Shown in pieces: positions 1-58,316 of a stretch of DNA of 64,000 nt. Each line of letters opens with the position of its first letter. The stretch's first letter is position 1. The DNA comes from Macrostomum lignano (lineage: Eukaryota). The stretch covers positions 248,001-312,000 of the forward strand of contig NIVC01000808.1 of assembly GCA_002269645.1 (NCBI GenBank). The letters run 5' to 3'. The notes under the pieces were generated by a model. It had not been told where the DNA came from. It worked only from the letters and a program-made list of their open reading frames with translations, and searched no databases. The translations under genes and the position numbers were made by a program.

Positions 1-16
1 CCCACAGCTCTGCCTT

Positions 17-358
17 ATGACACCACACCTCCTTTTTATGACCCTACATTTCCTTTTTATGACCCCACAGCTCTACCTTATGACCCCACAGCTCTACCTT
101 ATGACCCCACAGCTCTACCTTATGACCCCACAGCTCTACCTTATGACCCCACAGCTCTACCTTATGACCCCACAGCTCTACCTTATGACCCCACAGCTCT
201 ACCTTATGACCCCACAGCTCTACCTTATGACCCCACAGCTCTACCTTATGACCCCACAGCTCTACCTTATGACCCCACAGCTCTACGTGATGACCCCACA
301 GCTCCACCTTATGACCCCACACCTCCTTATGACCCCACAGCTCCACTTTATGACCTTA
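17..358. repeat. 21-bp minisatellite (CCCCACAGCTCTACCTTATGA), about 16 copies
   Basis: Near-perfect tandem copies read directly; explains the MTPQLYL-repeat ORFs. Confidence 0.95.
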
Positions 359-457
359 CACGTCTATTCTATGATTGCATAGTTTCCATTACCCCATAGT
401 TTGATTTAGTGTACACATAGCCAAAACACGCTCTGACCATTTAGACTGAATTCCCCA

Positions 458-1129
458 TTGCCGCAGCCGCGCTCCCAGCTACTCAAAGTGATCCTACTCG
501 GAGACGGCGGCGTTGGCAAGTCGTCGTTAATGACTCGCTACGTGCAGCAGCGCTTCGATCCGCACCAGCATCACACCATCGGGGTGGAATTCCTAGTTAA
601 AGAGGTCAGCCTGTCTGACGGGTCCCGGTACACCCTGCAGATCTGGGACACCGCCGGCCAGGAGAGATTCCGATCGCTGCGCACCCCGTTCTACCGCGGC
701 GCCGACGCGTGCATGCTGGTGTACAGCCTGGAGGATTCGAAATCGTTTGCTAATTTAAACATCTGGCGTCAGGAGTTCTTTCATTATTCCGGCGTGGAAT
801 CAGGCGAATTTCCATTTCTTCTAGTTGGCAATAAGAGCGACTCGGAGCGGGCCGCGGTGCCAGCTGATCAGGCCGAGGCCTGGGCTACAGAGCTGGATAT
901 GCCGCACTTATTAACCTCGGCTAAGAGTGCTCACAATGTTGACCAAGCGTTTGAGCAGTTGACTAGTCTATGGGCTAAGCGTCAACTGATTGGCTTAGCG
1001 CGCGGCGGATCCGCGGATCAGGATAATGATAATGAGGTTCGCGATGTGGGCACCGTGCGAATTAGGCGAGGCGGCGGCGAAAGTGCCGCTGGCAGTGTTG
1101 GCGGCTACCGTCGTCGGTGCTGTAATTGA
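458..1129 (+). CDS. RAB9: Rab9 small GTPase (single coding exon in window; true start codon not visible)
   Basis: G1 GDGGVGKS, G3 WDTAGQE, Rab9-typical FRSLRTPFYRG, G4 NKSD, G5 SAK, C-terminal CCN prenylation motif. The track start at 458 is TTG, with an in-frame TGA at 434-436, so the ATG must be spliced on (in-frame acceptors AG 465-466 or 477-478). Confidence 0.93.
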   Translation: MPQPRSQLLKVILLGDGGVGKSSLMTRYVQQRFDPHQHHTIGVEFLVKEVSLSDGSRYTLQIWDTAGQERFRSLRTPFYRGADACMLVYSLEDSKSFANLNIWRQEFFHYSGVESGEFPFLLVGNKSDSERAAVPADQAEAWATELDMPHLLTSAKSAHNVDQAFEQLTSLWAKRQLIGLARGGSADQDNDNEVRDVGTVRIRRGGGESAAGSVGGYRRRCCN

Positions 1130-1178
1130 GACGTTCTCGGCCTTCTAACAGTAGCTTAACTTTGTTGAAAGTGAAGCT

Positions 1179-1930
1179 AATATAGCTATTTGCAGCCCAG
1201 TTGGGCTTAAGCGCATTGAATTGAATCCAAGATAGGTTTGCCAAAGTACTGGAGCTTTCGTCTATGGTAGCAGGGCTGGCACGGCGGCATTTAATTTGGT
1301 CCAACAAGCATCAATTTGGTCCGTAACTTCATTTGCAACTGCTGTGGTGGAGCAAGATCAGCCCCAGTATTGTGGGCCATATGCTAGGCTGCCGAACGAA
1401 TGTCAATTGGCTTGTGATCGAAGCGCTCAACAGAGATGAACACCCAAAGGACATTGCAAGGTTGCTGAATGTAAAAAAATAATGGTTTACAGCATCCATC
1501 AGCGCGTTGAAACCACTGCCGGCAGAAATAGCCTGCAAATGGGTGGCAATCGCCAAGGCAAGTTGCTCAAGAACGTCAAGTCCAACTGCTACTCAATGCA
1601 GTTGAGACGAACCCTTTGTTTTTCGGTGCAGAAAATGCAGCAGAAGTTGAAGGCACAGTTTCAGTTGGTTATCAGATTTTGACTATCAGCAGACCTCTGG
1701 AAAAGCGACTGAAAATTTTTGGTAGAGACGCTGACATTCCAGCGGTACGCAACAACCCACAGGTTGTGAGAAGGCAAGGAGTTTGCCTGATGGCTCACGA
1801 GCGTTTGGACCAAATTGAATGCCGCTGTGCCAGCCTTGCTGCCATAGACAGGAGCTCCAGTACATTGGCAAACCTATCTTAGAGTAAATTCAATACGCGT
1901 AGGCCCAAATGGGCTGCAAAAAGCTATATT
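1179..1930. repeat. Long inverted repeat: 126-bp arms at 1179-1304 and 1805-1930, 500-bp spacer
   Basis: Manual alignment gives 110/126 identity with no indels; the same peptide echo appears in track ORFs 1062-1307(-) and 1616-1882(+). Confidence 0.9.
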
Positions 1931-3099
1931 CATACCGGATTCGCTCATTCAATTCAACTTAGAAAAACTTGAACGCCAACACATTCTTAGTGGCATAAAA
2001 TGGTGTTTTGTCAGCCAAATTGATAGTTAAGCCAACAAAGCAGTAAATAGACAGACAGCCCATAGACAGACATAGACATAAGCAGATGGTAAAGGCAACC
2101 AACTGTTAGTAATTTGGCCATAAGACATCAGCACAAAGAAGGACGCCAGCAGCAGCTTCTTTCATAGAAAGCATGCTTAAACATCAATTTCTATTCAGTA
2201 AAGATGAGAGTTATTACTCGTAATAAAAGTTGTGAAATTTTTGTGAAAAAAAAGTTGTGAAAAAAGGTCTACTAATTGTATGCTCTTCAGTTTAATGTCA
2301 CTTGAATTTAAGGTTGCAGCGGCCCCATGCATGAGCATTCGAGTATGGGGTTAAGAATGAAAAATGTATCTAATATTACTTTCCAATTTTACCATTATAA
2401 TGGCAAAACGCTAATTTTGCTACTGAAAAAAGACTGAATCACGTGACAAATTTTGATTCAGTTTAGTTAGGAGTAATGTACACTGCCAGCGCGCCAGTTA
2501 ATGTACATTGGCGCGACGATAAGGAGCAATAATAAAATGGACAGCCGGGGAGGGGGTGTTAAGTAGGGCACGCTTAAATCGACAGATAAATTAGCCAAAT
2601 ATGCAATAGTACTACTGTATTGTAAGTAGTTAAATAGAATATTTCGCAGATTGTATCTGGATTCTTGTTTATATTTTGCCAAAAAAAACGAAATTAATTC
2701 ACTGCCAAATAGGTTTCAGTAATCTGCGTTCGCACGAAACTGCTTTGCGTTTCCCTTTGTAATTTTCTAGTTTTTTTATATTCAGAAGAGCGCTTTGTTG
2801 ACTCGTTGCATTTCCCGCTAACAGTTCAAATAGCGCAATGGTGCAATCAAATATTTGATTAACTTTATGCGAGCTAGTATTTTATACGGAATGTAAGATT
2901 TCAGTATATATTTGTTATTGTATGCATTAAGTTGTATTATGATTTCTGTTAAATTTCGGCCAGTTAGTGTTTTGATTTGTTATTTTCACCCAGTTATTTT
3001 TATACCTAAACATGTCATTGCATTGGTGCACATTCTACATGTCACATGGAACTATCCTTTGTTTCTCCGTATGTCTTCTTGCCTCTAGTAAGTTTTCCC

Positions 3100-4045
3100 T
3101 CAGCCTCTTTAACTGTCTCTCCCTGTCTCGTCCTCTCTCTCTACTTGTCTCTCCCTGTCTCGTCCTCTCTCTACCTGTCTCGTCCTCTCTCTCCCTGTCT
3201 CGTCCTCCCTCTACCTGTCTCATCCTCTCTCTACTTGTCTCGTCCTCTCTCTACCTGTCTCGTCCTCTCTCTCCCTGTCTCGTCCTCTTTCTACTTGTCT
3301 TTCCCTGTCTCTTCCTCTCTCTCTCTACTTGTCTCTCCCTGTCTCGTCCTCTCTCTATTTGTCTCTCCCTGTCTCGTCCTCTTTCTACTTGTCTCTCCCT
3401 GTCTCGTCCTCTTTCTACTTGTCTTTCCCTGTCTCTTCCTCTTTCTACTTGTCTCTCCCTGTCTCGTCCTCTTTCTACTTGTCTTTCCCTGTCTCTTCCT
3501 CTCTCTCTACTTGTCTCTCCCTGTCTCGTCCTCTCTCTACTTGTCTCTCCCTGTCTCGTCCTCTTTCTACTTGTCTTTCCCTGTCTCTTCCTCTCTCTCT
3601 ACTTGTCTCTCCCTGTCTCTTCCTCTCTCTCTACTTGTCTCTCCCTGTCTCGTCCTCTCTCTATTTGTCTTTCCCTGTCTCGTCCTCTTTCTACTTGTCT
3701 CTCCCTGTCTCGTCCTCTTTCTACTTGTCTTTCCCTGTCTCTTCCTCTCTCTCTACTTGTCTCTCCCTGTCTCGTCCTCTCTCTCTACTTGTCTCTCCCT
3801 GTCTCGTCCTCTCTCTACTTGTCTCTCCCTGTCTCGTCCTCTCTACTTGTCTCTCCCTGTCTCGTCCCCTCTCTACTTGTCTCTCCCTGTTTCGTCCTCT
3901 CTCTACTTGTCTCTCCCTGTTTCGTCCTCTCTCTACATGTCTCTCCCTGTCTCGTCCTCTCTCTACTTGTCTCTCCCTGTTTCGTCCTCTCTCTACTTGT
4001 CTCTCCCTGTCTCGTCCTCTCTCTCTACTTGTCTCTCCCTGTCTC
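3100..4045. repeat. CT-rich ~30-bp minisatellite (CTACTTGTCTCTCCCTGTCTCGTCCTCTCT)
   Basis: Tandem copies read directly; source of the L/S/P/V ORFs at 3012-4154. Confidence 0.95.
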
Positions 4046-4491
4046 ATTCTTGCTGCTCCTGTCCGTGTTGCAGAGGTCTTTCAGTTTCCCTCTCCTAGCC
4101 CTTTGCCCTCCACTCTGCCACAATGCTTGTAAAACTGTCGTCGCTATGCTATAGTTATACAAATATTGTACTTGTTTATTCGTTTCCTATCGGTGTTTGC
4201 AATAGATTCTTTGCTACTACTTACATGTACTCTTTCCTGACCCAGCAGGTCTAGTTGTTTTTCTATTAATCTATTTGAGCTCATTAGAATTTTTCTCTTG
4301 TAATTTTGATTTTGATTTTGTAAGACTGTCAGATTTCCAATAAATTTTCAACAGAAAGATCTGCTAATATTGATAGATTTTTTCACTTATTTATTAACTG
4401 ATTGCTTGCGACTTCTATAGTTTCCTTACTACAAGCTAGCTGCTATTGATGGTGTTTAGATTAGCAATCCGCCCCATCTCAGCTCAACAGC

Positions 4492-4975
4492 ATGATCAGC
4501 TCAATCGATGAAGCCAAATGTGTTAAACAAGAGAAGCCGTCTGAGACAGAAGAAGAAATTGATGAAGCGTCGTTTCACACGGCCAACTGCCAGCCTCCTG
4601 ACAGCTCCTGCGACGGCGGCGGCGGATGGAGCCGGCTGAGCCTGCACGAGGATGAGGCTGGCGAGGAGAAGCTCATCTATTCAGATGCTGAGGACAATGA
4701 AGAGGAGCTGGCTGCGGCTTCTGCTCGGAGGAAGCGGACGGCGCTGCGGCCCACGGGTGAGACAGGCGCTAGGACAGGCACTAAGACAGACGCTAGGACA
4801 GGCACTAAGACAGACACTAAGACAGGCAGACAGACAGACAGACAGATAGACAGGCAGACACTAAGATAAACAGGCAGACAGACACACACACAGACAGATA
4901 CACACACAGACAGACACACACACAGACAGACACACACATAGACAGACAGGCAGACAGACAGACAGACAAACAGAC

Positions 4976-5009
<34 letters not shown>

Positions 5010-5015
5010 GCAGGC

Positions 5016-5110
<95 letters not shown>

Positions 5111-8100
5111 CGGACAGACGGACAGACAGACAGATTTATGGACGGACGGACAGGCGGACAGACAGACAGACAGACAGATAGATGGACGGACGGACGGACA
5201 GGCGGACAGACAGACAGATAGATAGATGGACGGACGGACGGACAGGCGAACAGACAGACAGATAGATAGATGGACGGACGGACGGACAGGCGGACAGACA
5301 GACAGATAGATAGATGGACGGACGGACAGGCGGACAGACAGACAGATAGATAGATGGACGGACAGACAAACAGGAGCAGAACGGAAATGCATGAACACTT
5401 AACTTTCGCTATTCTTACCGAAGTCTTGCCCTTGCATCACGGCCCTCGCATACCCCAATACAATGACCTAAATATTCGTCCCTTTGCAGAAAACGGCGCA
5501 CCCCCAGCCGGTGTCGAGCCGGCGCCAAAAAAGAAGCGCTCCCGCGCCTGGGGCCTGACGAAACCGGCCGTTGTGCCCGTTGTCATCACCGCTAGCGTTA
5601 TCAATGTAAATCGAAAGTATAATATACTCCTACTTTCCTACTGTAATCGGCTAGCATAGTAGCAAGTAGTGTTTGCACTGATAAAATTAATGCATCTATG
5701 TAATTGTATTTCTAGGAAATGCTGCCGAATCAGACAAAGCCGCCAGCGACTGACTGCAAAGACTCGCCGCCCGTCGTCGATTCCATCGACGTCGACGTCG
5801 CCAACAAAGACGAAGGCGAAGCCGCATCGGAGCTTGAGGACGGCGAAGTGTCGCCTACCAATAACAACAGTAATAGCAATCACAATAACTCTATGACTAG
5901 CCAGAAGAAATGGTTGCCCACTGTACTCGCCGAATCACGTGATCAAACGGACAGACCGAAAGATCAGTTGGGCACTCAGCCTGCCACCGCTTCTGCTGAT
6001 GCTGAACAGTCGCTAGGCCGACTGAGTCAATTTCATAGGACCGTCACTCGGCCGTGCATTTTCTGGTGCCTGGCGAAGCCTGCGGATCTCTCAGAAAAAT
6101 TGAAGAAGGATGTGAGAATGTTTAGTCTCTAATGTGTACATTATTTCATGAGCTATGACTGACTGGATTCTTGTATGACCTCATCAGCTATGACTGACTA
6201 GATTCTTGTATGACCTCATCAGCTATGACTGACTGGATTCTTATATGACCTCATCAGCTATGACTGACTGGATTCTTATATGACCTCATCAGCTATGACT
6301 GACTGGATTCTTGTATGACCTCATCATCTATGACTGACTAGATTCTTGTATGACCTTATCAGCTTTAACTGATTGGATTCTTGTATGACCTCATCAGCTA
6401 TGACAGACTGTATTCTTGTTGGACTCGCTGCGAGCTGCCCTTCGGCGAGAGTGGGAGCGGATCCCCCAGGATGTGCTGCGTGCCGCAGCCCGGTCTGTGA
6501 GACGTCGTCTTCGTGCTGTCATTCGCAACAGGGGCGGCTACATTGAGTGATACTTTGTGCCATAGACACTGACAGGTCCACCAACATCTCTGTAAAATTT
6601 CAACATAATATCTTTTAGCATACCATAGGTGGCCCATAATATGTGTTGTTGCAGGATTTTTGACGCACCCTGTATGACCTCATCAGCTATGACTGACTGG
6701 ATTCTTGTATGACCCCATCATCTGACTGACTAGATTCTTGTATGACCTCATCATCTATGACTGACTGGATTCTTGTATGACCTCATCAGCTATGACTGAC
6801 TGGATTCTTGTATGACCTCATCATCTGACTGACTAGATTCTTGTATGACCTCATCAGCTATGATCAACTGGATTCTTGTATGACCTTATCAGCTATGACT
6901 GATTCCAGTTTCTCAATAAGCCGTACAAATTCAGCCATCCGCTCCATCCTGGCACCGCAGCTGGCGGCTCCGCTTGCCCCGCCGCCGCCGCCGGACCCCT
7001 ACGAGTCGGTCTTCGACGTGGCCGCCCTGGAGGCCGCCGCTGGCGTCGAGCAGCTCCGACGCGACCGTCGCCGGCTGCACCCGAACTCGCGCCCGTTCCC
7101 GCCGGACTTCGAGGCCACCGGCGGCCGGCTGCCGCTGCCACTCGACCATTTTTCAGGCGTCGACATTGCCGACAATGGTCGGAGACGCCGACAACAGGCT
7201 CCGGCAGTGCTGCATCATTTTCCGCGCTGTATGAAGCCGTTCGAAGCGGATGAGTTGCATCAAGAATTGAGCAGTAGCAATTGCATGCCGAGGGCTGCAT
7301 CCGAGGATGATGAGGCTGCGGTGAAGCTGAACTGGCTGGACGACAGCAGCCGCTGGCCGGACGCTCTGCACAAGTTGCGCCGACAGCTGGCCGCCCTGTT
7401 GAAGGTGCCGTTCGCTCGAGCCGCTGTTGCTAGGCTGGAAAGACCGTCTGACTGCACCGACTGGTGGTGAGTTAGAGGTAGAGTTTGATGTGATTTCTGG
7501 TACAGTTAGAGGGAGACTTTCATGTCTCCCTGGCAGGAAATGTTTCACAGGGGTCCAGTAGAGTGTGTAGGATTTGAGTAGGGTGTCTGATAGAGTTGTA
7601 GCCTAGTGGTCAGAGCCTTGGTCTCACGACTTTGGAAGTCGGGGGTTCGATTCATGGTCCCACTCGAAACAATTTGTGTCCTTGAGCAAGACACTTAACT
7701 TTGCATTGCTTCAGTTCAGCCAGCTGTAAAATGGGTGCCAGCATTAGCTGGGGTAATTGAGGCTGTGTGTGGCGACCGCCCCCCAGTCCTTGGACTGAGC
7801 AGCCGTACGCAGCCTTCAGATGCGCCACGCAATAGCTGCGGCTGAGCTGTCGGTTGCGCATCTGCCCAATTGGGGCAGGTGTAATCAATCATTATTTTGA
7901 TTGCTGGTAGATTAGAGCGGACAGTTGAATAGGGCGTTTGGTTTGGCAGTCTCTAAAAGTTGGGTATAGTGTATGGTAGAGTCTCGTGGAGTTGGATTGG
8001 TTGTCTGGTTGACTGGCGAGTTGGTTGTCTGGTAGAGTGGCGAGTTGGTTGTCTGGTAGAGTGGCGATTTGGTTGTCTGGTAGAGTGGCGAGTTGGGTGT

Positions 8101-8490
8101 CTGGTAGAGTGGCGAGTTGGTTAGTTACCCGTACTCCTACCGCATGGTGTACTCGCGCTCCACCGCAGGCACCAGTCGGCAACATCAAAGGACAGCGGCG
8201 ATGCCGGCAGCAGCCCCGCGACCCCACTGGCCGCCCTGGTGTTCGTCGGCGGCCCGCCCAGGCCGGTGGAATTTCGCAGTCGCCAGCGTCAGAGTCGCGG
8301 GCAGCAGCGGAGGCTGCACCTGGCGGCGACGCGGCACGGTGGCCTGCTGGTGGCCGAAGGCTCGGCCGTCAGCGACTGGGCCGTCCGGCTGCCTGCCTTC
8401 GCTGCTGACGGGGACTCGCGTGCTGCTGCTGCTGCTGATCAGGCAGCCCAAGCACTGTTTATGCTGCTTTTTGTGCGCTCAGAGGAGCAG
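4492..8490 (+). CDS. Multi-exon nuclear protein with acidic N-terminus, NLS, RSB-like motif and degenerate AlkB (ALKBH2/3-like) domain
   Basis: Predicted exons 4492-4756, 5490-5605, 5716-6111, 6961-7466, 8169-8490; all GT-AG and phase-compatible, 535 codons. The C-terminal half aligns by eye with ALKBH3 (VLHHFPRCMKPFEADELHQEL; WPDALHKLRRQL..F..; DWWHQS; RHGGLLVAEG..SDWAVRLP). Terminal exon uncertain; candidate 12067-12084 (NESRV*). Confidence 0.7.
4760..5372. repeat. Compound (GACA)n/(GATA)n/(GGAC)n microsatellite in intron
   Basis: Read directly. Confidence 0.95.
6151..6905. repeat. 35-bp minisatellite (TGACCTCATCAGCTATGACTGACTGGATTCTTGTA) interrupted by a transposon fragment
   Basis: Tandem copies at 6151-6418 and 6673-6905. 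Confidence 0.93.
6419..6674 (+). mobile_element. 3' stump of a Tc1/mariner-superfamily DNA transposon
   Basis: 6419-6550 encodes LDSLRAALRREWERIPQDVLRAAARSVRRRLRAVIRNRGGYIE*, the typical Tc1/mariner transposase C-terminus. The fragment ends ...GACGCACCCTG+TA (reverse complement TA|CAGGGTG), a right TIR plus TA target. Confidence 0.85.
7593..7890 (+). mobile_element. tRNA-derived CORE-SINE (copy 1), intronic
   Basis: A box TAGCCTAGTGG, B box GGTTCGATTC, then TGTGTCCTTGAGCAAGACACTTAAC...CTGTAAAATGGG resembling the MIR/CORE domain; second copy at 18265-18561. Confidence 0.85.
8000..8125. repeat. 24-bp tandem repeat (GGCGAGTTGGTTGTCTGGTAGAGT), about 5 copies
   Basis: Read directly. Confidence 0.85.
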
Positions 8491-8530: not shown

Positions 8531-9524
8531 GGCTGTCTGTCTGTTTTGTGTTACTGATGCTGTCTGTCTGTTTTTTGTTACTGAGGCTGTCTGTTTTGTG
8601 TTACTGATGCTGTCTGTCTGTTTTGTGTTACTGAGGCTGTCTGTCTGTTTTGTGTTACTGAGGCTGTCTGTCTGTTTTGTGTTACAGATGCTGTCTGTCT
8701 GTTTTGTGTTACAGAGGCTGTCTGTCTGTTTTTTGTTACTGAGGCTGTCTGTCTGTTTTGTGTTACAGATGCTGTCTGTCTGTTTTGTGTTACTGATGCT
8801 GTCTGTCTGTTTTGTGTTACTGAGGCTGTCTGTCTGTTTTTTGTTACAGATGCTGTCTGTCTGTTTTGTGTTACAGATGCTGTCTGTCTGTTTTGTGTTA
8901 CTGAGGCTGTCTGTCTGTTTTTTGTTACTGAGGCTGTCTGTCTGTTTTGTGTTACTGATGCTGTCTGTCTGTTTTGTGTTACTGAGGCTGTCTGTCTGTT
9001 TTGTGTTACTGAGGCTGTCTGTCTGTTTTGTGTTACTGATGCTGTCTGTCTGTTTTGTGTTACTGAGGCTGTCTGTTTTGTGTTACTGAGGCTGTCTGTC
9101 TGTTTTTTGTTACTGAGGCTGTCTGTTTTGTGTTACTGATGCTGTCTGTCTGTTTTGTGTTACTGAGGCTGTCTGTCTGTTTTCTGTTACAGAGGCTGTC
9201 TGTCTGTTTTTTGTTACTGAGGCTGTCTGTCTGTTTTGTGTTACAGATGCTGTCTGCTTTGTGTTACTGATGCTGTCTGTATGTTTTGTGTTCTGAGGCT
9301 GTCTGTCTGTTTTCTGTTACTGATGCTGTCTGCTTTGTGTTACTGAGGCTGTCTGCTTTGTGTTACAGATGCTGTCTGCTTTGTGTTACTGAGGCTGTCT
9401 GTCTGTTTTCTGTTACTGATGCTGTCTGCTTTGTGTTACTGAGGCTGTCTGCTTTGTGTTACAGATGCTGTCTGCTTTGTGTTACTGAGGCTGTCTGTCT
9501 GTTTTCTGTTACTGATGCTGTTCT
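8531..9524. repeat. ~27-bp minisatellite (CTGTCTGTTTTGTGTTACTGAGGCTGT)
   Basis: Read directly; starts 40 bp after donor 8491. Confidence 0.95.
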
Positions 9525-9911
9525 GTTAATTAAAATAATTTCATTTTTAGTTAGTGAGTGACCTTTTTAGTTAGTGAGTAATAGTAGATTTCACGCCCCT
9601 GGAAATCTAGGCACGACATTCGCTAGGATTTCCCCGCGGAATTTTTCATAAACTTCTCTCTGTTATCTATCTGTTTGCTAGGTCATTAATTTGTCTCTAC
9701 CAGCTGACTTTGTGCTTATTTTATAATGCGCTTTTTCTGCACAGTGCACTCCCTGCCCTATCAGGGGGTCACTTTCACATTTGAGTAAACAAAAACATTT
9801 ATGTACAGCTGAGAATCTCACTGCACTTTTCCTGGTCACCTGTGCGGCTGGGCGGCTGGCTTATACTCTCTTACTTAGTTGATTGTGCCAGTCTGCGCCT
9901 GTGTCTACTGT

Positions 9912-11830
9912 CCTCTCCCCTTTCTCTCCCTTCCTCTCTCCCCTTTCTCTCCCTTCCTCTCTCCCCTTTCTCTCCCTTCCTCTCTCCCCTTTCTCTCCCT
10001 TCCTCTCTCCCCTTTCTCTCCCTTCCTCTCTCCCTTTCTCTCCCTTCCTCTCTCCCCTTTCTCTCCCTTCCTCTCTCCCCTTTCTCTCCCTTCCTCTCTC
10101 CCCTTTCTCTCCCTTCCTCTCTCCCCTTTCTCTCCCTTCCTCTCTCCCCTTTCTCTCCCTTCCTCTCTCCCCTTTCTCTCCCTTCCTCTCTCCCCTTTCT
10201 CTCCCTTCCTCTCTCCCCTTTCTCTCCCTTCCTCTCTCCCCTTTCTCTCCCTTCCTCTCTCCCCTTTCTCTCCCTTCCTCTCTCCCCTTTCTCTCCCTTC
10301 CTCTCTCCCCTTTCTCTCCCTTCCTCTCTCCCCTTTCTCTCCCTTCCTCTCTCCCCTTTCTCTCCCTTCCTCTCTCCCCTTTCTCTCCCTTCCTCTCTCC
10401 CCTTTCTCTCCCTTCCTCTCTCCCCTTTCTCTCCCTTCCTCTCTCCCCTTTCTCTCCCTTCCTCTCTCCCCTTTCTCCCTCCCCTTTCTCTCCCTTCCTC
10501 TCTCCCCTTTCTCTCCCTTCCTCTCTCCCCTTTCTCTCCCTTCCTCTCTCCCCTTTCTCTCCCTTCCTCTCTCCCCTTTCTCTCCCTTCCTCTCTCCCCT
10601 TTCTCTCCCTTTCTCCCTCCCCTTTCTCTCCCTTCCTCTCTCCCCTTTCTCTCCCTTCCTCTCTCCCCTTTCTCCCTCCCCTTTCTCTCCCTTCCTCTCT
10701 CCCCTTTCTCCCTCCCCTTTCTCTCCCTTCCTCTCTCCCCTTTCTCTCCCTTCCTCTCTCCCCTTTCTCCCTCCCCTTTCTCTCCCTTCCTCTCTCCCCT
10801 TTCTTCCTCCCCTTTCTCTCCCTTCCTCTCTCCCCTTTCTCTCCCTTCCTCTCTCCCCTTTCTCTCCCTTCCTCTCTCCCCTTTCTCTCCCTTCCTCTCT
10901 CCCCTTTCTCTCCCTTCCTCTCTCCCCTTTCTCTCCCTTTCTCCCTCCCCTTTCTCTCCCTTCCTCTCTCCCCTTTCTCTCCCTTCCTCTCTCCCCTTTC
11001 TCCCTCCCCTTTCTCTCCCTTCCTCTCTCCCCTTTCTCCCTCCCCTTTCTCTCCCTTCCTCTCTCCCCTTTCTCTCCCTTCCTCTCTCCCCTTTCTCCCT
11101 CCCCTTTCTCTCCCTTCCTCTCTCCCCTTTCTTCCTCCCCTTTCTCTCCCTTCCTCTCTCCCCTTTCTCTCCGTTCCTCTCTCCCCTTTCTCTCCCTTCC
11201 TCTCTCCCCTTTCTCTCCGTTCCTCTCTCCCCTTTCTCTCCCTTCCTCTCTCCCCTTTCTCTCCGTTCCTCTCTCCCCTTTCTTTCCCTTCCTCTCTCCC
11301 CTTTCTCTCCCTTCCTCTCTCCCCCTTTCTCTCCCTTCCTCCCTCCCCTTTCTCTCCCTTCCTCTCTCCCCTTTCTCTCCCTTCCTCTCTCCCCTTTCTC
11401 CCTCCCCTTTCTCTCCCTTCCTCTCTCCCCTTTCTCTCCCTTCCTCTCTCCCCTTTCTCCCTCCCCTTTCTCTCCCTTCCTCTCTCCCCTTTCTTCCTCC
11501 CCTTTCTCTCCCTTCCTCTCTCCCCTTTCTCTCCGTTCCTCTCTCCCCTTTCTCTCCCTTCCTCTCTCCCCTTTCTCTCCGTTCCTCTCTCCCCTTTCTC
11601 TCCCTTCCTCTCTCCCCTTTCTCTCCGTTCCTCTCTCCCCTTTCTTTCCCTTCCTCTCTCCCCTTTCTCTCCCTTCCTCTCTCCCCCTTTCTCTCCCTTC
11701 CTCCCTCCCCTTTCTCTCCCTCCCCTTTCTCTCCCTTCCTCTCTCCCCTTTCTCTCCCTTCCTCTCTCCCCTTTCTCTCCCTTTCTCCCTCCCCCTTTCT
11801 CTCCCTTCCTCTACCCCTTTCTTCCCTTCC
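9912..11830. repeat. ~1.9-kb polypyrimidine minisatellite, 23-bp unit (TTCCTCTCTCCCCTTTCTCTCCC)
   Basis: Read directly; essentially only C/T on the + strand; followed by (TTA)n at about 11926-11985. Confidence 0.97.
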
Positions 11831-11929
11831 TTATTTATCCCCGGTACCTTAATCCTCCCATACGCTTCCAGTCTTCAACCTCAACTTAATTTTCTGTTTT
11901 ATCTTTTCGTTCAATATACTCGTATTATA

Positions 11930-11985
<56 letters not shown>

Positions 11986-12399
11986 GGCTATTATTTCACA
12001 AAAATACCGCTTAAAAGAGAAATAAATCATTTTTCACTTTCTCCCGCTGCTTCAATTATTTTGCAGAATGAGAGTCGAGTTTAAGCCGGAGAGTACAAAC
12101 TGAGGACGAGCCTGCTGCAATCAATGCATTTCTACCTGTCTATTGACCAGTCAGCCGCCGCTGTGTGCACTCGCGCTTTTCATGTTTAGTTATAATTGCG
12201 TCGCGCCTGTTATCCGCGAGCCGGTCTGGCGCCCCAATCACTAGAAATTGGGCAATTATATTTTTTTGTCTTGTTGTTTCGATTGAAAATTTTCTTCTCA
12301 ATTCCTTTTCCATTTTTTTCCTTTGAGCCTTTTTTCCCTATGGCCATTCTAGAAGCAAAAGGAACGGTGGCTTTAATAAGTCTGTTGTTTGTTTGAAAA

Positions 12400-20914: not shown

Positions 20915-22196
20915 ATGGACTTCCCGTTGGTGCCAGCAAGTCAGTCGGGATTCCTCATCATGCTGGCCGCCGATGACAGCAACAATTTCACGGCCTGCTG
21001 CCAGCAGACGGTAAGCTTTCTGATTTATAAAAAATATTTCTAAGAGACTTTACTGTCTTTTCACATTCTTTCTTGGAACAACCTTTCTCGTGATTCTCCT
21101 ATAGGGAAATCCTTTTGGGGATTCCCCTTTAAGGAAATCCTTTTGGGGGATTCTCCTTTAGGAAAATCCTTTTGGGGGATTCTCATTTAGGGAAATTCTT
21201 TTGAGGGATTCCCCTTTAGGGAAATCCTCTTGGGGATTCTCCTTTAGGGAAATCCTTTTGGGGGATTCTCATTTAGGGAAATTCTTTTGAGGGATTCCCC
21301 TTTAGGGAAATCCTTTTGGGGATTCCCCTTTAAGGAAATCCTTTTGGGGGATTCTCCTTTAAGAAAATCAACTGCAGGGATACTCTTTTAGGGGAATCCT
21401 TGATAGGGTTCTATTCTGAAGTAATTTATTTTAGTTCTTTTGTAAAAATCTAAGACGGGATTCAATCTACAGTTAGGAAGATTATTTTTGAACTAAAGTT
21501 ATTTTTGAACTTTTGAACTAGCAAGGGAATTAGTTTTTGCAGATAGATAACTGGACCTTGCAGTCACAACAGGCCGACCCGCTGCCTCCATTGGCCGAAA
21601 TGGGCGGCAGCAGCTGCATTCCCTACGCCACCGAGGAGCTGGAGAGCTCGGAGCCGCGTCTTGATCTCGATTTTATTATCGACCACTTGCCGACGTCGAC
21701 GGAGCCACTGGCGACGCATCAGCCAGCATCAACTGTCGACTCAACCGGACTGCAGTGCATCCTGCACTACCTGCAGGGCGCTATCAGCGACTCGACGCCG
21801 GCGCCAACTCCGGCGCAGGCACCGACATTGCCAGCAAAAACGTCCGAGAGCGTGTCGAAAAGTGGACAACGACGACAGTCGATCGCTTCGACGACGACGG
21901 CCGTCGCCGCTCTGTACGCTGCACCAGGCGCCGTGCACGCTTGCCCGCTGAAGGGCTGCGACAAGGCCTACAGCAAGAGCTCCCACCTGAAAGCTCACCT
22001 TCGAGCTCACACTGGGGAAAAGCCGTACAGATGCGACTGGCCCGGCTGTGACTGGCGATTCTCCAGGTCGGACGAGCTGACCAGGCACCGTCTGAAGCAC
22101 ACCGGCCTGAGGCCCTACCGCTGCCAGCTGTGCCAGCGGGCTTTCAGCCGCTCCGATCATCTGGCGCTGCATTTGCGGAAGCACAAGCAGATCTGA
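20915..22196 (+). CDS. KLF: Kruppel-like factor (three C-terminal C2H2 zinc fingers)
   Basis: Exon 1 20915-21010 (MDFPLV...CCQQT|GTAAG) joins in phase 0 to 21543-22196. Fingers [28 protein letters not shown] / [19 protein letters not shown] / [21 protein letters not shown] give the KLF signature. Paralogue not resolved. Confidence 0.9.
21100..21410. repeat. ~30-bp internally palindromic minisatellite (GGGAAATCCTTTTGGGGGATTCTCCTTTA) in KLF intron
   Basis: About 10 copies; GGAAATCC and GGATTCCC halves are near-complementary. Confidence 0.88.
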
Positions 22197-22562: not shown

Positions 22563-23485
22563 AGGGAATGGTGCTTGACTGGGTGCTGCGGACTGCTCTT
22601 CCTACCGACGACGACGGCTTTCTGCTGCGGCGACGCGTGGGTCGACGTCAACCGGAGAAGCGGCTCAGCGTGCTTGGCTACGCCGACGACCTCGCCCTGC
22701 TGTCCTCGACCGTCGAGGGTGCCCAACGGCAGCTGGACAGGCTAGTTGCCGTTGCGGCGAGCGTCGGCCTGGTGGTCAACACGCAGAAGACCGTTGTGCT
22801 CTGCGTGCCGGACGACATCGAGGCTGCAATATTCTGCCGAGGCGCTGACAGGCAGGCGACGCGAGCTCCCGCGATGTCAGCAGTTCGTCTACCTCGGCGG
22901 TCTGGTTCCAGACGCTCGCGAGGACCTCCGACGCTGCTGCGGGCTTGCCTGGGCTGCCTTTCGTTCTGTGAGGGCAGTCCTGCAGTCCGAGGCCCTACCG
23001 GACCGCCAGAGGGCGGCGCTGTTCCAGGCGGTAATCGAGACCGTCCTGCTCTACAACGCCGAGACCTGGACGCTGACGGACTCACTCGAACAGCAAGTCG
23101 ATGCGGCGCATGCTGGCCTGCTGCGCGCCGCCTTCAACATCGGCGTCGAGCGAGTCAACAACGCGGCACTCTATCGCCGCGCTGGCCTGCCACGTCCAAG
23201 CGATCTACTGTGCCGTCGGCGACTCCAGCTCGCAGGCCATCTCATCCGCGCCGAGTCGTACTGCCCACAGCCGGTGCAGGAGGTGCTGCTGCTCACGCTG
23301 CAGGCACCCTACCGGCGAGGTCAAGCGCGAACTCGGCGTTACGTCGACTGTCTGCTGGCTGACGCCGGCGCCCCGGACACTGCCGGTGGCGCAGCCTTTG
23401 TTCGCGCCCAAGCCATGAAGCGCGCCCTGTGACGCTGACTTTTGCCATCCTGACAGCGTATTTTCTATTTTGATGTTGTTGTTGT
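22563..23485 (+). mobile_element. 5'-truncated non-LTR retrotransposon (RTE-like), frameshifted RT C-terminus
   Basis: YADD motif, then YLG, ETWTL and RRRLQLAGHL; frameshift near 22860; (GTT)n tail; 12-bp TSD TGATTTTAACCT at 22551-22562 and 23486-23497. Confidence 0.92.
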
Positions 23486-26378: not shown

Positions 26379-26927
26379 NNNNNNNNNNNNNNNNNNNNNN
26401 NNNNNNNNNNNNNNNNNNNNNNNNNNNNNNNNNNNNNNNNNNNNNNNNNNNNNNNNNNNNNNNNNNNNNNNNNNNNNNNNNNNNNNNNNNNNNNNNNNNN
26501 NNNNNNNNNNNNNNNNNNNNNNNNNNNNNNNNNNNNNNNNNNNNNNNNNNNNNNNNNNNNNNNNNNNNNNNNNNNNNNNNNNNNNNNNNNNNNNNNNNNN
26601 NNNNNNNNNNNNNNNNNNNNNNNNNNNNNNNNNNNNNNNNNNNNNNNNNNNNNNNNNNNNNNNNNNNNNNNNNNNNNNNNNNNNNNNNNNNNNNNNNNNN
26701 NNNNNNNNNNNNNNNNNNNNNNNNNNNNNNNNNNNNNNNNNNNNNNNNNNNNNNNNNNNNNNNNNNNNNNNNNNNNNNNNNNNNNNNNNNNNNNNNNNNN
26801 NNNNNNNNNNNNNNNNNNNNNNNNNNNNNNNNNNNNNNNNNNNNNNNNNNNNNNNNNNNNNNNNNNNNNNNNNNNNNNNNNNNNNNNNNNNNNNNNNNNN
26901 NNNNNNNNNNNNNNNNNNNNNNNNNNN
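26379..26927. other. Assembly gap (549 N)
   Basis: Run of N preceded by a poly-G tract. Confidence 1.
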
Positions 26928-29900
26928 AACAGCAGAGCTGCCGACCTGGCTTCCCGAGCGCTTCAAGCCTCTGGCGCAGGGGCTCGGCGGATCCGAGGAT
27001 TCGAGCACCGGCCCAGGCTGAACCCGGCCGTGCCTCCGGTAGCGCAGCCGCTCCGCCGTATTCCACTCAGCATTAAGGACAAGGTCCAGGCGGAGATCGA
27101 CCAGCTGTTGGCAGACGACATCGTCGAGGAGATCCAAGCTTCCGAGTGGATTTCGAACCTGGTGATCGTCCCGAAGCCCGAAGGTAAAATCAGAATCTGC
27201 AACGACCTCAGGTGTCCAAACAAGGCTATAGTGCCGGATAAGCAGCCGCTGCCAACTTTCGAGGAGCTGACGACGGAGTTCAAGGGCTCGACCGTGTTCA
27301 CTAAGCTCGATTTGAACTCGTCGTACCTGCAGCTGGAACTGGCGGAAGACCGGCGGGACCTAACGGCCTTCATCACGGAGAAAGGCCTTTACCGGTACAA
27401 GCGCGTCTGCTACGGCCTTAACAGCGCTCCAGCAGCCTTTCAGAAGGTGCTTAGTAAGATTATCCACGGCTGTTTGGGGACGCTGCACTACATTGATGAT
27501 ATCGTTGTGCATGCTGCCAACGAGACGGAGCACCGGCGGCGGCTCACGGCAGTGCTGGACCGGCCTGCTCGCCATGGCGTAACGCTTAACACCGCCAAGT
27601 GCCAGTGGGCTGCAGAGTCCGTGCAGTTTCTGGGCTACATCGTCTCGGCGAGAGGCCTTCAGCCGATGCAGTCCAATGTGGAAGCCATCGAAGCGGTGCC
27701 GGAGCCTCAGAACACCGAGGCGGTGGCCTCATTTCTCGGAATGGTAAAGTTTTACTCGAACTTCCTACACAACCTATCCGACATCGCCGAGCCGCTGCTG
27801 CAGCTACTTCGCAAGGACCAGCCTTGGAACTGGACAGCGGACTGCCAGAAGGCCTTTTGGAGGCTTAAGAAAATGGTAGTGTCTCCAACGTGCCTGCGAT
27901 TCTTCTGTCCCGACGACAAGATAATCGTGGCCTGCGACAGCTCTGCGCACGCTCTGGGTGCCGTGTTGATGCAAGAAGACAGCGCTGGCGTTCTCAAGCC
28001 AGTTGCTTTCGCGTCGAGGACTCTGTCGGCGACCGAGCGCAAGTACTCCGCGTCAGAAAGAGAGGCGCTGGCATGTATCTTCGCCTGCGAGCGTTGGCAC
28101 TACTTCCTGTTCGGCCGGAGATTCGAACTGCACACCGATCACCAGGCTCTGACGACGCTGCTGACGGCTCAAGGCAGCGGCCACCGACCTTTGCGGCTGC
28201 ACCGATGGGCCGACCGCCTGCTCGCGTACGACTTCCAAGTGTGCCACGTTCCCGGCAAGAAGAACATCGTGCCCGACTTTTTGTCACGCCATGGCGCTTT
28301 CGGAGAAGATTGCGCTGAAGATCCGACCGAGCACCAGGTGAATGCCGTATTGTTATCGGGCGCGTTGGAGGTTGTCAGCGCAAGCGAGTTGGCCGAGGCA
28401 TCCCTGCAGGACCCGGTAATAAGCGAAGTGATAGCTCTGACGCTCCAGGGGTGGCCGAGCTCCATCAAGCATCTGCGGTCGGAGTTGCAGCCGTTCTGGA
28501 GGATCCGAATGCAGCTGACGGCCTGGAATGACGGCAAGTGCCGGCACTCGAGCGGTGATCCCCGCATCCCTGAGGGAGAAGACGCTGCAGCTGGCACACT
28601 TCGGACACCTCGGCGTGAGCAGAATGAAGCAGCACTGTCGGGACGCCGTCTGGTGGCCGCAAATCGACCAGCACATTGAGGAGTTCGTGCGGCACTGTGA
28701 GGCCTGTCTGCTAAGCGAGAAGAATTTCAAGCCATCCAAGACGGTTCTGACCCCGACAAAGTGGCCGACGCGTCCATGGGAGGAGCTTCAGCTAGACATC
28801 TTTGGGGAGCTGCACTCGGCTCCGAACTCCTGCCGCTTCATCCTGGTGCTGTACGACTTGCACTCAAAGTGGCCGGAGGCTGCCTGCATGTCAACCATCA
28901 CAAGCGCTGATGTCATCGACGCCTTGACAACGTGGTTTAGTCGTTGGGGGCTGCCGAAGAGTATCAACACAGATGGAGGGCCTCAGTTCGTGTCCGGTGA
29001 TTTCGAGGATTTTCTCCGGCGCTGTGGCATCCAGCATCGGCAGTCGCCGCACTACCACCCTCAGGGCAACGCGGCGGTGGAGCGTTTCAACCGGTTTCTC
29101 AAGGACGGCCTCAAGACGCACTTGGAGGAGGGCTATGACTTTAAGGACGCGGTGAAGGCACTGCTGTGGTCGTACAGAGCCACCCCGCATGCACTGACTG
29201 GAGTTTCGCCGGCGGAGCTGATGACAGGCCGGAAGATCAGCACTCCCCTGACAGCCCTACAGCCAAGGACGGCAGCGCGGCACAGACTGGCGGCCGGCAT
29301 CAAGCGGAAACAGCAGCGAGTTTTCAACCAGCTCAACTCGACCAGGAGACCCCCGCCGACTTTCATGGTCGGCGACTGGGTGCAGGTGAAGCGGCCGTTC
29401 GCCCGGGGCAAGCTAAGCAGCCGCCTGTCCGAGCCTCGTGAGATCTCCCGGATCGCGAGCGCCACCACCGTCATCCTCAATGATGGCTCCCGCTGGCACG
29501 TCGACAATTGTGTTCGAGTGCCGCGGCCCGCCGGAGCGCTGCCACACTGGCCCGCGACGGCTTCCAGCGCGGCGGCGATTCCGGCGGAGGCGGCGGCGGA
29601 GGCGGCAGAGCCAGCGCGGCCGCAGCAGACAGCCCAGACTGCGGTTCGAGGGAGCACGAGGACGCGAGCGCCTCCACAGTGGTACGGGGAAATTGTGACG
29701 CATTAACTGATTTATTAGTGACTGCTAACTGACTTTCTCACGAACGATGTGCATTTGAAGCCAAATTAGTTGTTCTCAGACTAATATTGCGATTTAATGC
29801 TCAGTGAAATACTCAGTGTGATGATCTACTTTTATTCCTTCGATGCTCAGTCATGCGCTTTTATTCCTTGTTCAATATTTCGACGAATTCGGTTTTCGCG

Positions 29901-56152: not shown

Positions 56153-57642
56153 CTAATTAAAGGAACATCCGTGAAAGGTGCAATTGTTGAAGGCAAACTT
56201 CGTACCAACAGAATAGGCAGCTTCAGTGCTAACACTAACCTCAGTCGATACTGCAGTCTCACCGACAATCTCAACAGCATCAGCATGTTCGGGTGGCCCA
56301 GCTTCTTGCTCTAGATCATGACGATTCAACGCCACCTGAACAGACTCACTCGTCTTTTGAAGCGACCGGTCGCGACGCTTGGCTAGGTACCTCCTAGTCG
56401 TTCGCTCGCTCAGCTGTCCAGTAATGCTCATTATATCGCTCATGCTGCGCCCTGCCGCCTCGAGATCGCATATTCGCGTGACCCTGTTTTAGAGTGCAAA
56501 TTTATATAGTTGGATTCATGAGTAACTGGTAACATAACATGTATCATAACATAATTAAAGTTACTATTATTAATTTATCAGTCTTACCGAATGCAATGAT
56601 TCGTGTAGGTCTTCGCAAGTCCCGCCTTCGTACTCAAGTTTCTCATGAAGCCACTCAGATAATTCTCTCCACGGTTCTGCTTCGAGGAGAAAACAGGGCC
56701 TCCATCGTTGCGGCTGGCCAAAGGACGAGGAAACAGATGGTTGTCCTTCGTTGTAACTGGAAGCAGCTTGAGGTATTTCTCCACCTTTTCCACGTCGTAA
56801 ATTCTGGCCTGCTTGTTGTCCGGCTGCTTCTTGGCCTTCTCTGGATCTGCTGACTTATTTTTCGAGGGCAACGGAGGCAGACAGTAGTACGGCTTTCCAT
56901 CAGAGTCGACGTGCAATTGAAGTGAGCTTCTATCCTTCAAGAACTTGAGGTGCTCCTGGCCTCGCTCGCCAAAGCTGTATATGATGTAGAATAATAATTT
57001 GTCCTGCTCAACTTCAGCTGTGCTGCCTTGGAAGTAGATCATCAGCTTCCTCATGTCCCCCTCCTCGATTGGCTCAAACTGCTGCGTCCTCCCACCACTC
57101 TGGTGAAAGTCTCGAACCTTCACACGCAGCATGCTATTTGCAGAAGAAAAGTCTTCTCCATTGATGATGTCAACGGTTAGCTTCTCGATCATCCGCAAAT
57201 AGCGCTGCAGTCCAGCCCTGATGCACACCAGCGATGCGGGCGAGTAAGGTTCGCCGTCAATCTTTTTCAGTTTAAAGTAGAAGTAGCGAATGTATTGGTT
57301 GAGCACCGAATTCGGAATGGTTTGTAAATTGCGCTGAAGATTTTCCTCTGTGAGGAATGTCTTGAACCGCTGTCCATGGCTGATCATCTGCTTCCTGCTG
57401 TCTGCTGGTAGGCTGTCAATCTCGGCGATGTCCATGGCGCTGATATCTACGCCGCCTTCCTGCAGGAGCGGCAGATGCTCATCGGGCTCGGGCTCCTTTT
57501 GAATGAATTCGAGAAATCTAGCGAACTCGTCGTCCCTTCTGTCATTGTAAGAAGCCTCCGAAACAAAATTCAATTCGTCCTTAGTCACGTTGCCCAGCTC
57601 ACTGCAGGGCAAATGCTTCCAATTAATGAGCGGTGCCTCCAT
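56153..57642 (-). CDS. Crypton-type tyrosine recombinase (DUF3504-like), 2 exons, about 461 aa
   Basis: Exons 57642-56588 and 56483-56153 around a 104-bp GT-AG phase-2 intron. Motifs YSPASL..IRAGLQRYL, FGERGQE (Arg-I), SKN, NHCIR (HxxR), TGQLS, RRYL (Tyr), C-terminal FNNCTF. Confidence 0.88.
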
Positions 57643-58316
57643 CTCTGCAGCCGTCCGCTTTTCTCTATCTGAGATTTGATCTCTAGACACGCAAATATTT
57701 ATATTTGTAAGTAATTTAGGGGTGGGTGCAGAGTAAGGGGTGGGTGACTTCAGGTGCGCGACTTAAAGGTGAGACATAGGCGAGGTGGAGGTAACCTTAT
57801 CTCAAACCCCCTTAGAAGCATCGACTGATAAGAATTCACGATAGTGTACATAAAGTGCGTAGATTACGTAAGAGTTTTGAAATTTTAAGCAATGTTACCG
57901 CTCGTGTCAAAGGCCATTGCCTTAAACTCTGACTTCCGATGAACCCTCCATTGTTCCAAGCTGTACGCTTATTACGCTCATTTTTCAACGCTTCGAAACC
58001 ATTTCAAAATCTGCCGAGTTGCGAAGTCATTGAGAACCTATTTTAGCAGCAAATTGGCACCGCAGGCAAAGTTTTACTTTTATAACATACTTTATAGTTT
58101 AAAAAATTAGATTAAAGACTTTATAGTTGGGTTCATGACCCCATGGCCATCCCAGAAAAAGATCCCAGGAATGGCCACAAGGAGATGATGAAGCAATGTA
58201 GCTTGAATAACTGCTTCTAGGCAATGTATAGCTTCATCCATTGTATCTACATGTACGTAGTATGCTAGCAGTGCATCGCTCGAAGTTCATGAACATTTGG
58301 TTTATGTAAATATAAA

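Follow-up and report, generated by a model that had tools for sequence, protein, structure and literature searches.

The literature consulted names no RSB proteins other than Acinus and Pinin; they compete for RNPS1-SAP18, defining two flavours of peripheral exon junction complex (EJC) assembly, and their complexes with these factors are mutually exclusive (PMC5441173). In Acinus, the LLDDLF part of the motif contacts SAP18 (PMC5441173, a review). The dioxygenase ALKBH3 coordinates iron through His191, Asp193 and His257, while its RED hairpin and Tyr143 hold the flipped base (PMC10816986). Here we describe a gene that combines elements resembling both systems. It lies in a 64,000-nucleotide stretch of the flatworm Macrostomum lignano genome (contig NIVC01000808.1, positions 248,001 to 312,000, forward strand; referred to below as the window), and its 540-residue product carries an RSB-like segment ahead of a C-terminal domain that is very probably related to ALKBH2/3 and appears to be catalytically dead. 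Judged from sequence, this architecture is real, unusual and confined to one flatworm lineage; the function proposed for it below is putative. Fusion of an RSB-type motif to an AlkB-type domain was not described anywhere in the literature searched, and a targeted search returned no natural AlkB-family pseudoenzyme. The author of a preliminary description of this DNA likewise knew of no described protein with this architecture, although the protein itself has been deposited as "hypothetical" and an N-terminal fragment of it carries the name Acinus.

The window contains GT..AG introns, microsatellites and transposon debris, a content typical of eukaryotic DNA. All five exons put forward in the preliminary description have GT..AG borders and compatible phases and together give 535 codons without a stop, and the features named there (an acidic, intrinsically disordered region, PKKKR, ELEDGEV and FHRTVTRPCIFW) were all recovered, positions included. 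The reading frame is still open at the 8490 donor, however, so that the gene extends beyond the end of the DNA covered by that description and is completed by a sixth exon:

4483-4491 (+), short 5′ leader, following a probable (trans-)splice acceptor (AG at 4481-4482)
4492-4756 (+), exon 1, carrying the start codon and encoding the acidic, disordered N-terminus; donor GTGAGA
5490-5605 (+), exon 2, carrying PKKKRSR, which resembles a nuclear localisation signal (NLS)
5716-6111 (+), exon 3, acidic, carrying both short motifs; acceptor TAG, donor GTGAGA
6961-7466 (+), exon 4, proline-rich linker leading into the ALKBH3-like domain, of which it encodes the first part
8169-8490 (+), exon 5, remainder of the ALKBH3-like domain (HQS..., GGLLVAEGSAVSDWAVRLP, ALFMLLFVRS)
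12067-12084 (+), exon 6, NESRV and a TAA stop, completing 540 aa; acceptor ttttgcag

The leader was placed using a UniProt fragment (P0130), which begins with LNSM (CTC AAC AGC ATG) directly after "cag"; an in-frame TAG lies upstream of the start codon, at 4462. Exon 1 ends in a basic patch (RRKRTALRP, aa 79-87), and the domain portion of exon 4 consists of a strand and helix, VLHHFPRCMKPFEADELHQEL, and a shortened lid, running as far as DWW. Exon 6 agrees with the C-terminus of three database proteins (P0001, P0128 and P0129).

The product read from the window equals GenBank PAA76612.1 (BOX15_Mlig028660g3, "hypothetical protein") minus the two leading residues of that model. A word-indexed search of 5.8 billion proteins, which yielded M. 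lignano copies and frameshifted fragments only, gave a full-length match at 99% identity to BOX15_Mlig019945g2, partial, a "hypothetical protein" of M. lignano, and the corresponding 90% cluster holds three full-length GenBank models on three contigs (Mlig019945.g2, Mlig028660.g3 and Mlig008114.g3). The NIVC01 annotation was built from RNA-seq using StringTie, TACO and a de novo transcriptome, with transcriptional units divided wherever trans-splicing or polyadenylation had been mapped by experiment (PMC5730564). Because the annotation is RNA-seq-derived, the exon joins are supported at the transcript level at three loci, all of which use the same splice junctions; a separate model, UniProt A0A1I8F580, contains the same exon 3/4 junction (KLKKD/LAAPL). 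One gene model therefore spans both halves, as the preliminary description had proposed in assigning them to a single transcript, and the exons very probably constitute one gene, expressed as judged from the RNA-seq-derived annotation.

Several observations concern the surroundings of the gene and its introns. The ".g2" and ".g3" locus names suggest that it lies downstream in a transcriptional unit holding several genes, the ".g3" suffix marking a gene cut from such a unit at trans-splice or poly(A) evidence (PMC5730564). At a homeologous locus, the upstream neighbour on the same strand (1-4448 of the retrieved stretch, in a region beyond the 5′ end of the window) lies some 5.5 kb away and codes for a chromatin protein of ARID4 type (RBB1NT, ARID, chromo-like). 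All introns are packed with tandem repeats (window 4760-5373, 6146-6419, 6671-6902, 7997-8122, 8532-9526 and 9913-11831). Among these, AGAC recurs about 140 times as a microsatellite, a 27-bp unit about 38 times and a CT-rich 23-bp unit about 80 times, and a 24-bp repeat is also present; the 3.6-kb intron before exon 6 is made up almost entirely of the 27-bp and 23-bp units. The three homeologous loci differ in gene length (about 7.6, 6.9 and 6.3 kb), presumably through these arrays. In intron 3, a short frame at 6422-6547 (+), DSLRAALRREWERIPQDVLRAAARSVRRRLRAVIRNRGGYIE followed by a stop, resembles by reading alone the C-terminal end of a Tc1/mariner-type transposase; a 35-bp minisatellite lies on either side of this remnant, and Pfam gave no match to the 42-aa piece. 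A stretch of intron 4 at about 7600-7680 (+), gtagcctagtggtcagagccttggtctcacgactttggaagtcgggggttcgattc..., is tRNA-like, with a GGTTCGA box in the T-arm, and suggests a tRNA-derived short interspersed element; it was called by neither ARAGORN nor Rfam, which gave no match anywhere in the window.

The N-terminal half of the protein contains the segment that resembles the RSB motif:

6013-6111 (+), aa 227-259, RSB-like segment LGRLSQFHRTVTRPCIFWCLAKPADLSEKLKKD, with sub-threshold Pfam matches
6031-6066 (+), aa 233-244, hairpin core FHRTVTRPCIFW, within the RSB-like segment

Fly Acinus (PDB 4A8X chain B) served as the reference motif, and the flatworm segment compared with it is SLGRLSQFHRTVTRPCIFWCLAKPADLSEKLKKD. 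Acinus (ACIN1, Drosophila hook-like; the ASAP complex) and the flatworm protein share a core, F-x-[KR]-T-x-x-x-P-C-I-[FY]-W, which is followed by P..[IL].EK (flatworm sequence FHRTVTRPCIFWCLAKPADLSEKL). The F, T, P-C-I and W residues, the later P and the E-K pair are common to both, the K/R, Y/F and I/L changes are conservative, and in each case the motif stands in a disordered, charged context. When a 42-mer was compared with 24,736 Pfam models, just two were matched, both of them RSB-containing: Pinin_SDK_memA (PF04696; 16.4 bits, E=0.0097, model positions 92-126 of 130) and RSB_motif (PF16294; 12.7 bits, E=0.15, positions 70-85 of 102, hairpin core only, below the gathering score of 27.1). 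Across queries the Pinin_SDK_memA match ranged from 11.7 to 16.4 bits (model positions 87/92-126 of 130), short of the gathering score of 25. Both matches were specific to the two RSB carriers and fell on the same residues. In control searches the fly and human Acinus motifs scored 73 and 81 bits on RSB_motif; on the Pinin model, the true human Acinus RSB reached only 10.3 bits, compared with 16.4 for the flatworm segment.

Further tests of the segment gave a graded picture. A profile hidden Markov model built from two Acinus sequences scored it at 7.3 bits, a value equalled by one in 5000 shuffles. The pattern F.[KR]T...P.[IL][FY][WY], which was defined post hoc, is expected about 4e-7 times per protein in composition-matched shuffles. 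Two of the three homeologs read FRRT instead of FHRT, which is nearer to the FRKT of Acinus. A phmmer search of the PDB with the RSB segment returned no match, and neither a SAP nor an RRM domain was matched by Pfam in aa 1-262, even at E up to 10. The RSB claim of the preliminary description thus leads to precisely the two RSB families of Pfam, but to both below threshold, and at the level of sequence the similarity is specific though sub-threshold. Neither known carrier is reproduced in full. The Pinin (PNN; the PSAP complex) model is the best Pfam match and covers the hairpin and the helical part that follows, yet only its last 35 positions are involved, and the flatworm protein has neither the coiled-coil part nor the Pinin N-terminal domain. 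In contrast to Acinus, it has no SAP motif, RRM or RS/RD/RE tail, and its motif precedes an AlkB-like domain, an arrangement that we have not seen reported for any Acinus.

The second half of the protein is occupied largely by a single domain:

7090-8481 (+), aa ~303-532, ALKBH2/3-derived pseudo-dioxygenase domain, assigned by profile comparison and broken by intron 4 (7467-8168)

Pfam gave no match to 2OG-FeII_Oxy_2 (PF13532) at E up to 10 with either the whole protein or the isolated domain, so the Pfam check suggested in the preliminary description came out negative for this domain and the assignment rests on directed profile tests. In an unbiased phmmer search of the PDB (aa 333-540 against 177,635 sequences), human ALKBH3 ranked second and third at non-significant E values of 0.64 and 1.1, in the same alignment that had been proposed previously. 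The references for the directed tests were 14 database sequences of vertebrate ALKBH3 together with human ALKBH2 and Escherichia coli AlkB, the latter two verified against PDB chains; the scores were as follows (hmmsearch with filters off):

ALKBH3 only: hmmsearch 10.5 bits; hhalign P=0.0018, probability 15%
ALKBH2 only: hmmsearch 9.0 bits; hhalign P=0.019
ALKBH3 + ALKBH2 + AlkB: hmmsearch 14.8 bits; hhalign P=1.9e-6, probability 89.5%, 153 columns

A score that rises as the profile is broadened is the behaviour expected for true remote homology. Of 5000 shuffles matched in composition, the best gave 9.4 in HMMER and none attained the scores above. In hhalign, where the real domain scored 46.9, 100 shuffles gave 13.4 ± 2.4 and went no higher than 22.1, and reversing the sequence gave 13.7. 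Unguided MAFFT alignment found the same register relative to ALKBH3 and widened the match to ALKBH3 residues ~53-277. These comparisons indicate that the domain is very probably related to AlkB and ALKBH2/3, in agreement with the ALKBH2/3-like domain of the preliminary description. The likeness is collinear over ~155-230 residues and includes the first strand and helix (FEADELHQEL, compared with AEADEIFQEL in ALKBH2), the W-x-x-L helix, the D-W motif, an ASLSFG-type strand, HG.LL..EG....DW..R.P and a last hydrophobic strand ending in Arg. The flatworm protein differs from ALKBH3 and ALKBH2 in its active-site and lid substitutions, in the absence of a Pfam match and in a 300-aa disordered N-terminal extension. 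No introns are shared with elephant-shark ALKBH3, whose introns lie near aa 151/152, 221 and 254 (flatworm, DWW/H), a result that is neutral for the relationship.

Structure prediction was of limited use in judging whether the domain has the double-stranded beta-helix fold of the AlkB family. A single-sequence AlphaFold2 (AF2) model of the whole protein had a confidence score (pLDDT) of 39 and was unusable. With an imposed ALKBH3 alignment the core strands reached pLDDT 70-83, and Foldseek returned ALKBH2/3 at TM ~0.56-0.62 for this model, which is conditioned on the alignment under test. Because the input alignment imposes the answer, this result was not counted as independent evidence.

The positions at which ALKBH3 binds iron, 2-oxoglutarate (2OG) and the substrate base are largely altered in the flatworm domain:

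ALKBH3 Asp193, iron ligand: Lys (or Ser)
ALKBH3 His257, iron ligand: Val
ALKBH3 His191, iron ligand: His429 (HMMER and one MAFFT alignment) or Thr (the other MAFFT alignment)
ALKBH3 Asn179 and Tyr181, 2OG-contacting positions: Ala and Leu
ALKBH3 Leu177, active-site pocket: Ala
ALKBH3 RED hairpin (R122-D124), substrate side: inside an 18-residue deletion
ALKBH3 Tyr143, anchor of the flipped base: Leu
ALKBH3 Tyr141, recognition lid: Val
ALKBH3 Arg145, substrate side: gap
ALKBH3 Arg131, substrate side: kept, the sole retained lid residue

We take the equivalents of ALKBH3 N179 and Y181, together with the C-terminal R-x-N-x-T-x-R, to be the 2OG-binding positions of the AlkB family. At the C-terminal positions of this type, R269 is retained as R, N271 is L or Q, and R275 is R in one alignment (A1) or M in the other (A2). 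Neither the iron triad, nor the 2OG residues, nor the nucleotide-recognition lid has the composition that defines the AlkB family. The earlier statement that the domain lacks metal ligands is borne out for D193 and H257; the third ligand, H191, is alignment-dependent, being replaced by Thr or retained as His429. That the C-terminal domain is catalytically dead is well supported by these alignments.

The region upstream of the RSB-like segment supplies two further short elements:

5525-5545 (+), aa 101-107, NLS-like PKKKRSR in exon 2, with a putative NLS function based on the classical K-K/R-x-K/R pattern
5836-5850 (+), aa 168-172, EDGEV, candidate ARS2-recruitment motif inside ELEDGEV (aa 166-172)

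The N-terminal ~260 residues are acidic and disordered, as the preliminary description had stated, with AF2 pLDDT below 50 over most of exon 1. The ARS2-recruitment motif has the form [ED][ED]GE[ILV] (PMC9402713) and constitutes the ELM class LIG_ARS2_EDGEI_1 (PMC10767929); its consensus has also been given as (E/D)(D/E)G(E)(L/I/V), and ZC3H18 has a Val-ending copy, LEEGEV (bioRxiv 10.1101/2023.07.25.550453). EDGEV fits this form, and its flanks (EAASEL and SPTNNN), together with pLDDT below 50 at the site, provide the disordered acidic context in which the motif is found. EDGEV arises in 0.5-0.7% of composition-matched shuffles. The "EDGE motif" listed previously, for which no identity had been given, is therefore present and matches a published motif, and as a candidate ARS2-recruitment site it is a lead, not a finding. 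An acidic motif in a disordered region is common to the flatworm protein and the ARS2-recruitment-motif (EDGEI) proteins Red1/ZFC3H1, FLASH, ZC3H18, ZC3H4, NCBP3 and PHAX; the flatworm protein differs from them in having a single, candidate copy and in lacking their zinc-finger or cap-binding complex (CBC)-binding elements.

Homologs of the protein were sought with a full phmmer search over 1.84 billion representative proteins. The search found only the M. lignano copies and their frameshifted fragments, with no outside relative, and the fusion that the preliminary description had proposed to seek in related species was not among these matches. One database match (P0007) was rejected as a spurious repeat protein. 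On this evidence the gene is lineage-restricted, or is evolving too fast to be traced. Within M. lignano there are three homeologous, near-identical copies, and extraction of the coding sequences of the two other loci showed that all open reading frames (ORFs) are intact. Pairwise ratios of nonsynonymous to synonymous substitution rates (dN/dS) among the three copies are 0.25-0.35, and 12 nonsynonymous changes were counted against 13 synonymous ones, where about 19 of 25 would be expected to be nonsynonymous under neutrality (binomial P=0.003). Sequence comparison thus places the three copies under moderate purifying selection, as measured on few changes.

Four features, namely PKKKRSR, EDGEV, the hairpin of RSB-like type and the pseudo-AlkB domain, are compatible with an adaptor acting in nuclear RNA processing. 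The explanation that we favour, tentatively, is that the gene encodes an M. lignano-restricted, modular nuclear adaptor or competitor for RNPS1-SAP18 that carries a pseudo-AlkB module. The RSB-like hairpin would dock between the RRM of RNPS1 and the ubiquitin-like domain of SAP18, as in Acinus and Pinin, and the outcome would be either a third RNPS1-SAP18 complex, exclusive of the other two, or the withdrawal of both factors from Acinus and Pinin by titration. A further contact, with CBC-ARS2, may come from EDGEV. The pseudo-AlkB domain, the C-terminal ~240 residues read as a strongly diverged ALKBH3-type jelly-roll, would contribute binding without enzymatic activity; because its Fe(II) and 2OG ligands and most of the base-recognition lid have been lost, it should be unable to demethylate. 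The proposal starts from what the sequence shows, namely a gene model joining both halves, three copies that are all intact, kinship with AlkB, catalytic residues that have been lost and an RSB similarity that is specific though sub-threshold, and from these we infer nuclear localisation, all of the protein-protein contacts and any role in RNA metabolism. In ALKBH8 (RRM + AlkB + methyltransferase), an AlkB fold is likewise joined in one polypeptide to an RNA-linking module; there, however, the enzyme is active and the RRM is folded, whereas the AlkB-like domain of the flatworm protein is predicted to be dead and its link would be a short docking motif.

A number of results weigh against the adaptor proposal. 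By the Pfam rule the segment belongs to neither RSB family, since both matches lie under the gathering scores of 25 and 27.1 bits; the N-terminal helix of the Acinus motif, LLDDLF, is not conserved and reads GRLSQF; and the conserved, exposed Lys-Thr-Lys/Arg is Arg-Thr-Val. The domain has no match to PF13532, and no AF2 model was usable except the one conditioned on the ALKBH3 alignment. The search of 1.84 billion representatives yielded no ortholog in which conservation of the motif could be tested, a dN/dS of ~0.3 on ~25 changes indicates moderate constraint only, and the full text and three supplement sets contained no expression or interaction data for Mlig019945, the other two locus names not having been searched. 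The chief alternative is that the gene is a fast-evolving, lineage-specific ALKBH3-type remnant that gained a disordered N-terminal extension, its motifs chance or non-functional, binding neither RNPS1-SAP18 nor ARS2, with any role it has unrelated to the EJC. The absence of homologs outside M. lignano, the sub-threshold RSB matches and unconserved SAP18-contacting helix, the readiness with which acidic disordered regions yield short motifs (EDGEV in 0.6% of shuffles) and the degraded catalytic and lid residues, as expected under relaxed constraint, are all consistent with it. We nevertheless consider this main rival, the most serious of the alternatives, somewhat less likely than the adaptor, as the segment matches precisely two RSB families out of 24,736, its pattern is expected only ~4e-7 times per protein, the ORFs are intact in three copies at dN/dS ~0.3, and three independent features of nuclear-RNA type occur within one disordered region. 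The Acinus-like hairpin core, PCI[FY]W, would also suit an M. lignano ortholog of Acinus, as implied by the UniProt name of the exon 1-3 fragment, that had lost SAP and RRM and gained an ALKBH3-derived C-terminus. Such an origin is improbable, given that no SAP or RRM is matched at E up to 10, that RSB_motif gives 12.7 bits compared with 73-81 for fly and human Acinus, and that the Pinin model gives this segment the better score.

Two other readings are less probable still. In its full form, the preliminary description saw a third RSB protein tethering a non-catalytic reader of methylated RNA (m1A, m3C, m6A) to the EJC. This model draws on the same architectural evidence as the adaptor proposal, and AlkB folds do bind methylated bases (PMC10816986). 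The elements that hold a flipped methylated base are gone, however: the RED hairpin is deleted, Tyr143 is Leu, Arg145 falls in a gap and Arg131 alone is kept. The methyl-RNA reader idea is weakened by these losses, and we think the full model very unlikely. The last reading is that two separate genes, an Acinus-like one (exons 1-3) and an AlkB-like one (exons 4-6), were merged artificially from a polycistronic, trans-spliced unit. UniProt models from a different assembly break the gene in two precisely at the exon 3/4 boundary, giving fragments of 262 aa (exons 1-3, with the automatic name "Acinus") and 289 aa (exons 4-6); operon-like units are numerous in M. lignano (PMC5730564, PMC8629364); exon 4 starts in phase 0; and third-position GC is 0.62 in exons 1-3 versus 0.74 in exons 4-5. 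Yet the exons are joined at three RNA-seq-based loci, and a pipeline that cuts at trans-splice sites placed no cut here. The KLKKD/LAAPL junction recurs in A0A1I8F580, the exon 3/4 junction is in frame and stop-free, and the split UniProt models are open-ended, with no start or stop at the break. In exon 4 no ATG occurs before aa 350, a position already within the first strand and helix that the domain contains. A merger of two genes is accordingly the least probable of the readings considered.

Some features of the deposited sequences stand apart from this comparison. The difference in third-position GC may mark a chimeric origin or only amino-acid composition. A0A1I8F580 has frameshifted stretches and a tandem second partial copy of the gene. 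The automatic UniProt names "SNF2_N domain-containing" and "PHD-type domain-containing", attached to the gene fragments A0A1I8FKV6 and A0A1I8F580, were disregarded, as Pfam found no such match in the C-terminal domain or the whole protein; this check covered the window copy, not the two UniProt fragments themselves.

Elsewhere in the window, the following features were noted:

21537-22196 (+), ORF ending in three KLF/Sp-type C2H2 zinc fingers with TGEKPY linkers (Pfam zf-C2H2, E=5e-17)
22568-23432, second, degraded reverse-transcriptase fragment
26379-26927, run of 549 N bases (assembly gap), directly before the retrotransposon pol region
27030-29706 (+), pol region of a long terminal repeat (LTR) retrotransposon, with RVT_1, RNase H, an integrase zinc-binding domain and an rve core
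56584-57690 (-), 368-aa ORF with a weak, sub-threshold match to the QRICH1 domain (23 bits against a cut-off of 30.8)
59927-62725 (+), uninterrupted 932-aa ORF in which an acidic 16-residue unit, SESVSEDNSKPQDAGA, is repeated in tandem ~20 times, with a C-terminal part rich in Arg, Ser and Asp; no Pfam match

In its boldest form, which we regard as improbable, the adaptor proposal would mean that M. lignano has evolved a third RSB protein, forming an alternative RNPS1-SAP18 complex beside ASAP and PSAP, linked through ARS2 to the CBC and using a domesticated, dead ALKBH3 as a new binding module. The general lesson may be small, because a single flatworm lineage and sub-threshold motifs are involved. 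The predictions are testable, because M. lignano supports transgenesis (PMC5730564). If the proposal is true, a third RSB carrier would show that the RNPS1-SAP18 docking system is open to co-option by new genes. The domesticated ALKBH3 would then be a natural case of a repair dioxygenase turned pseudoenzyme within messenger ribonucleoprotein metabolism, and a clean example of a repair enzyme reused as a scaffold.

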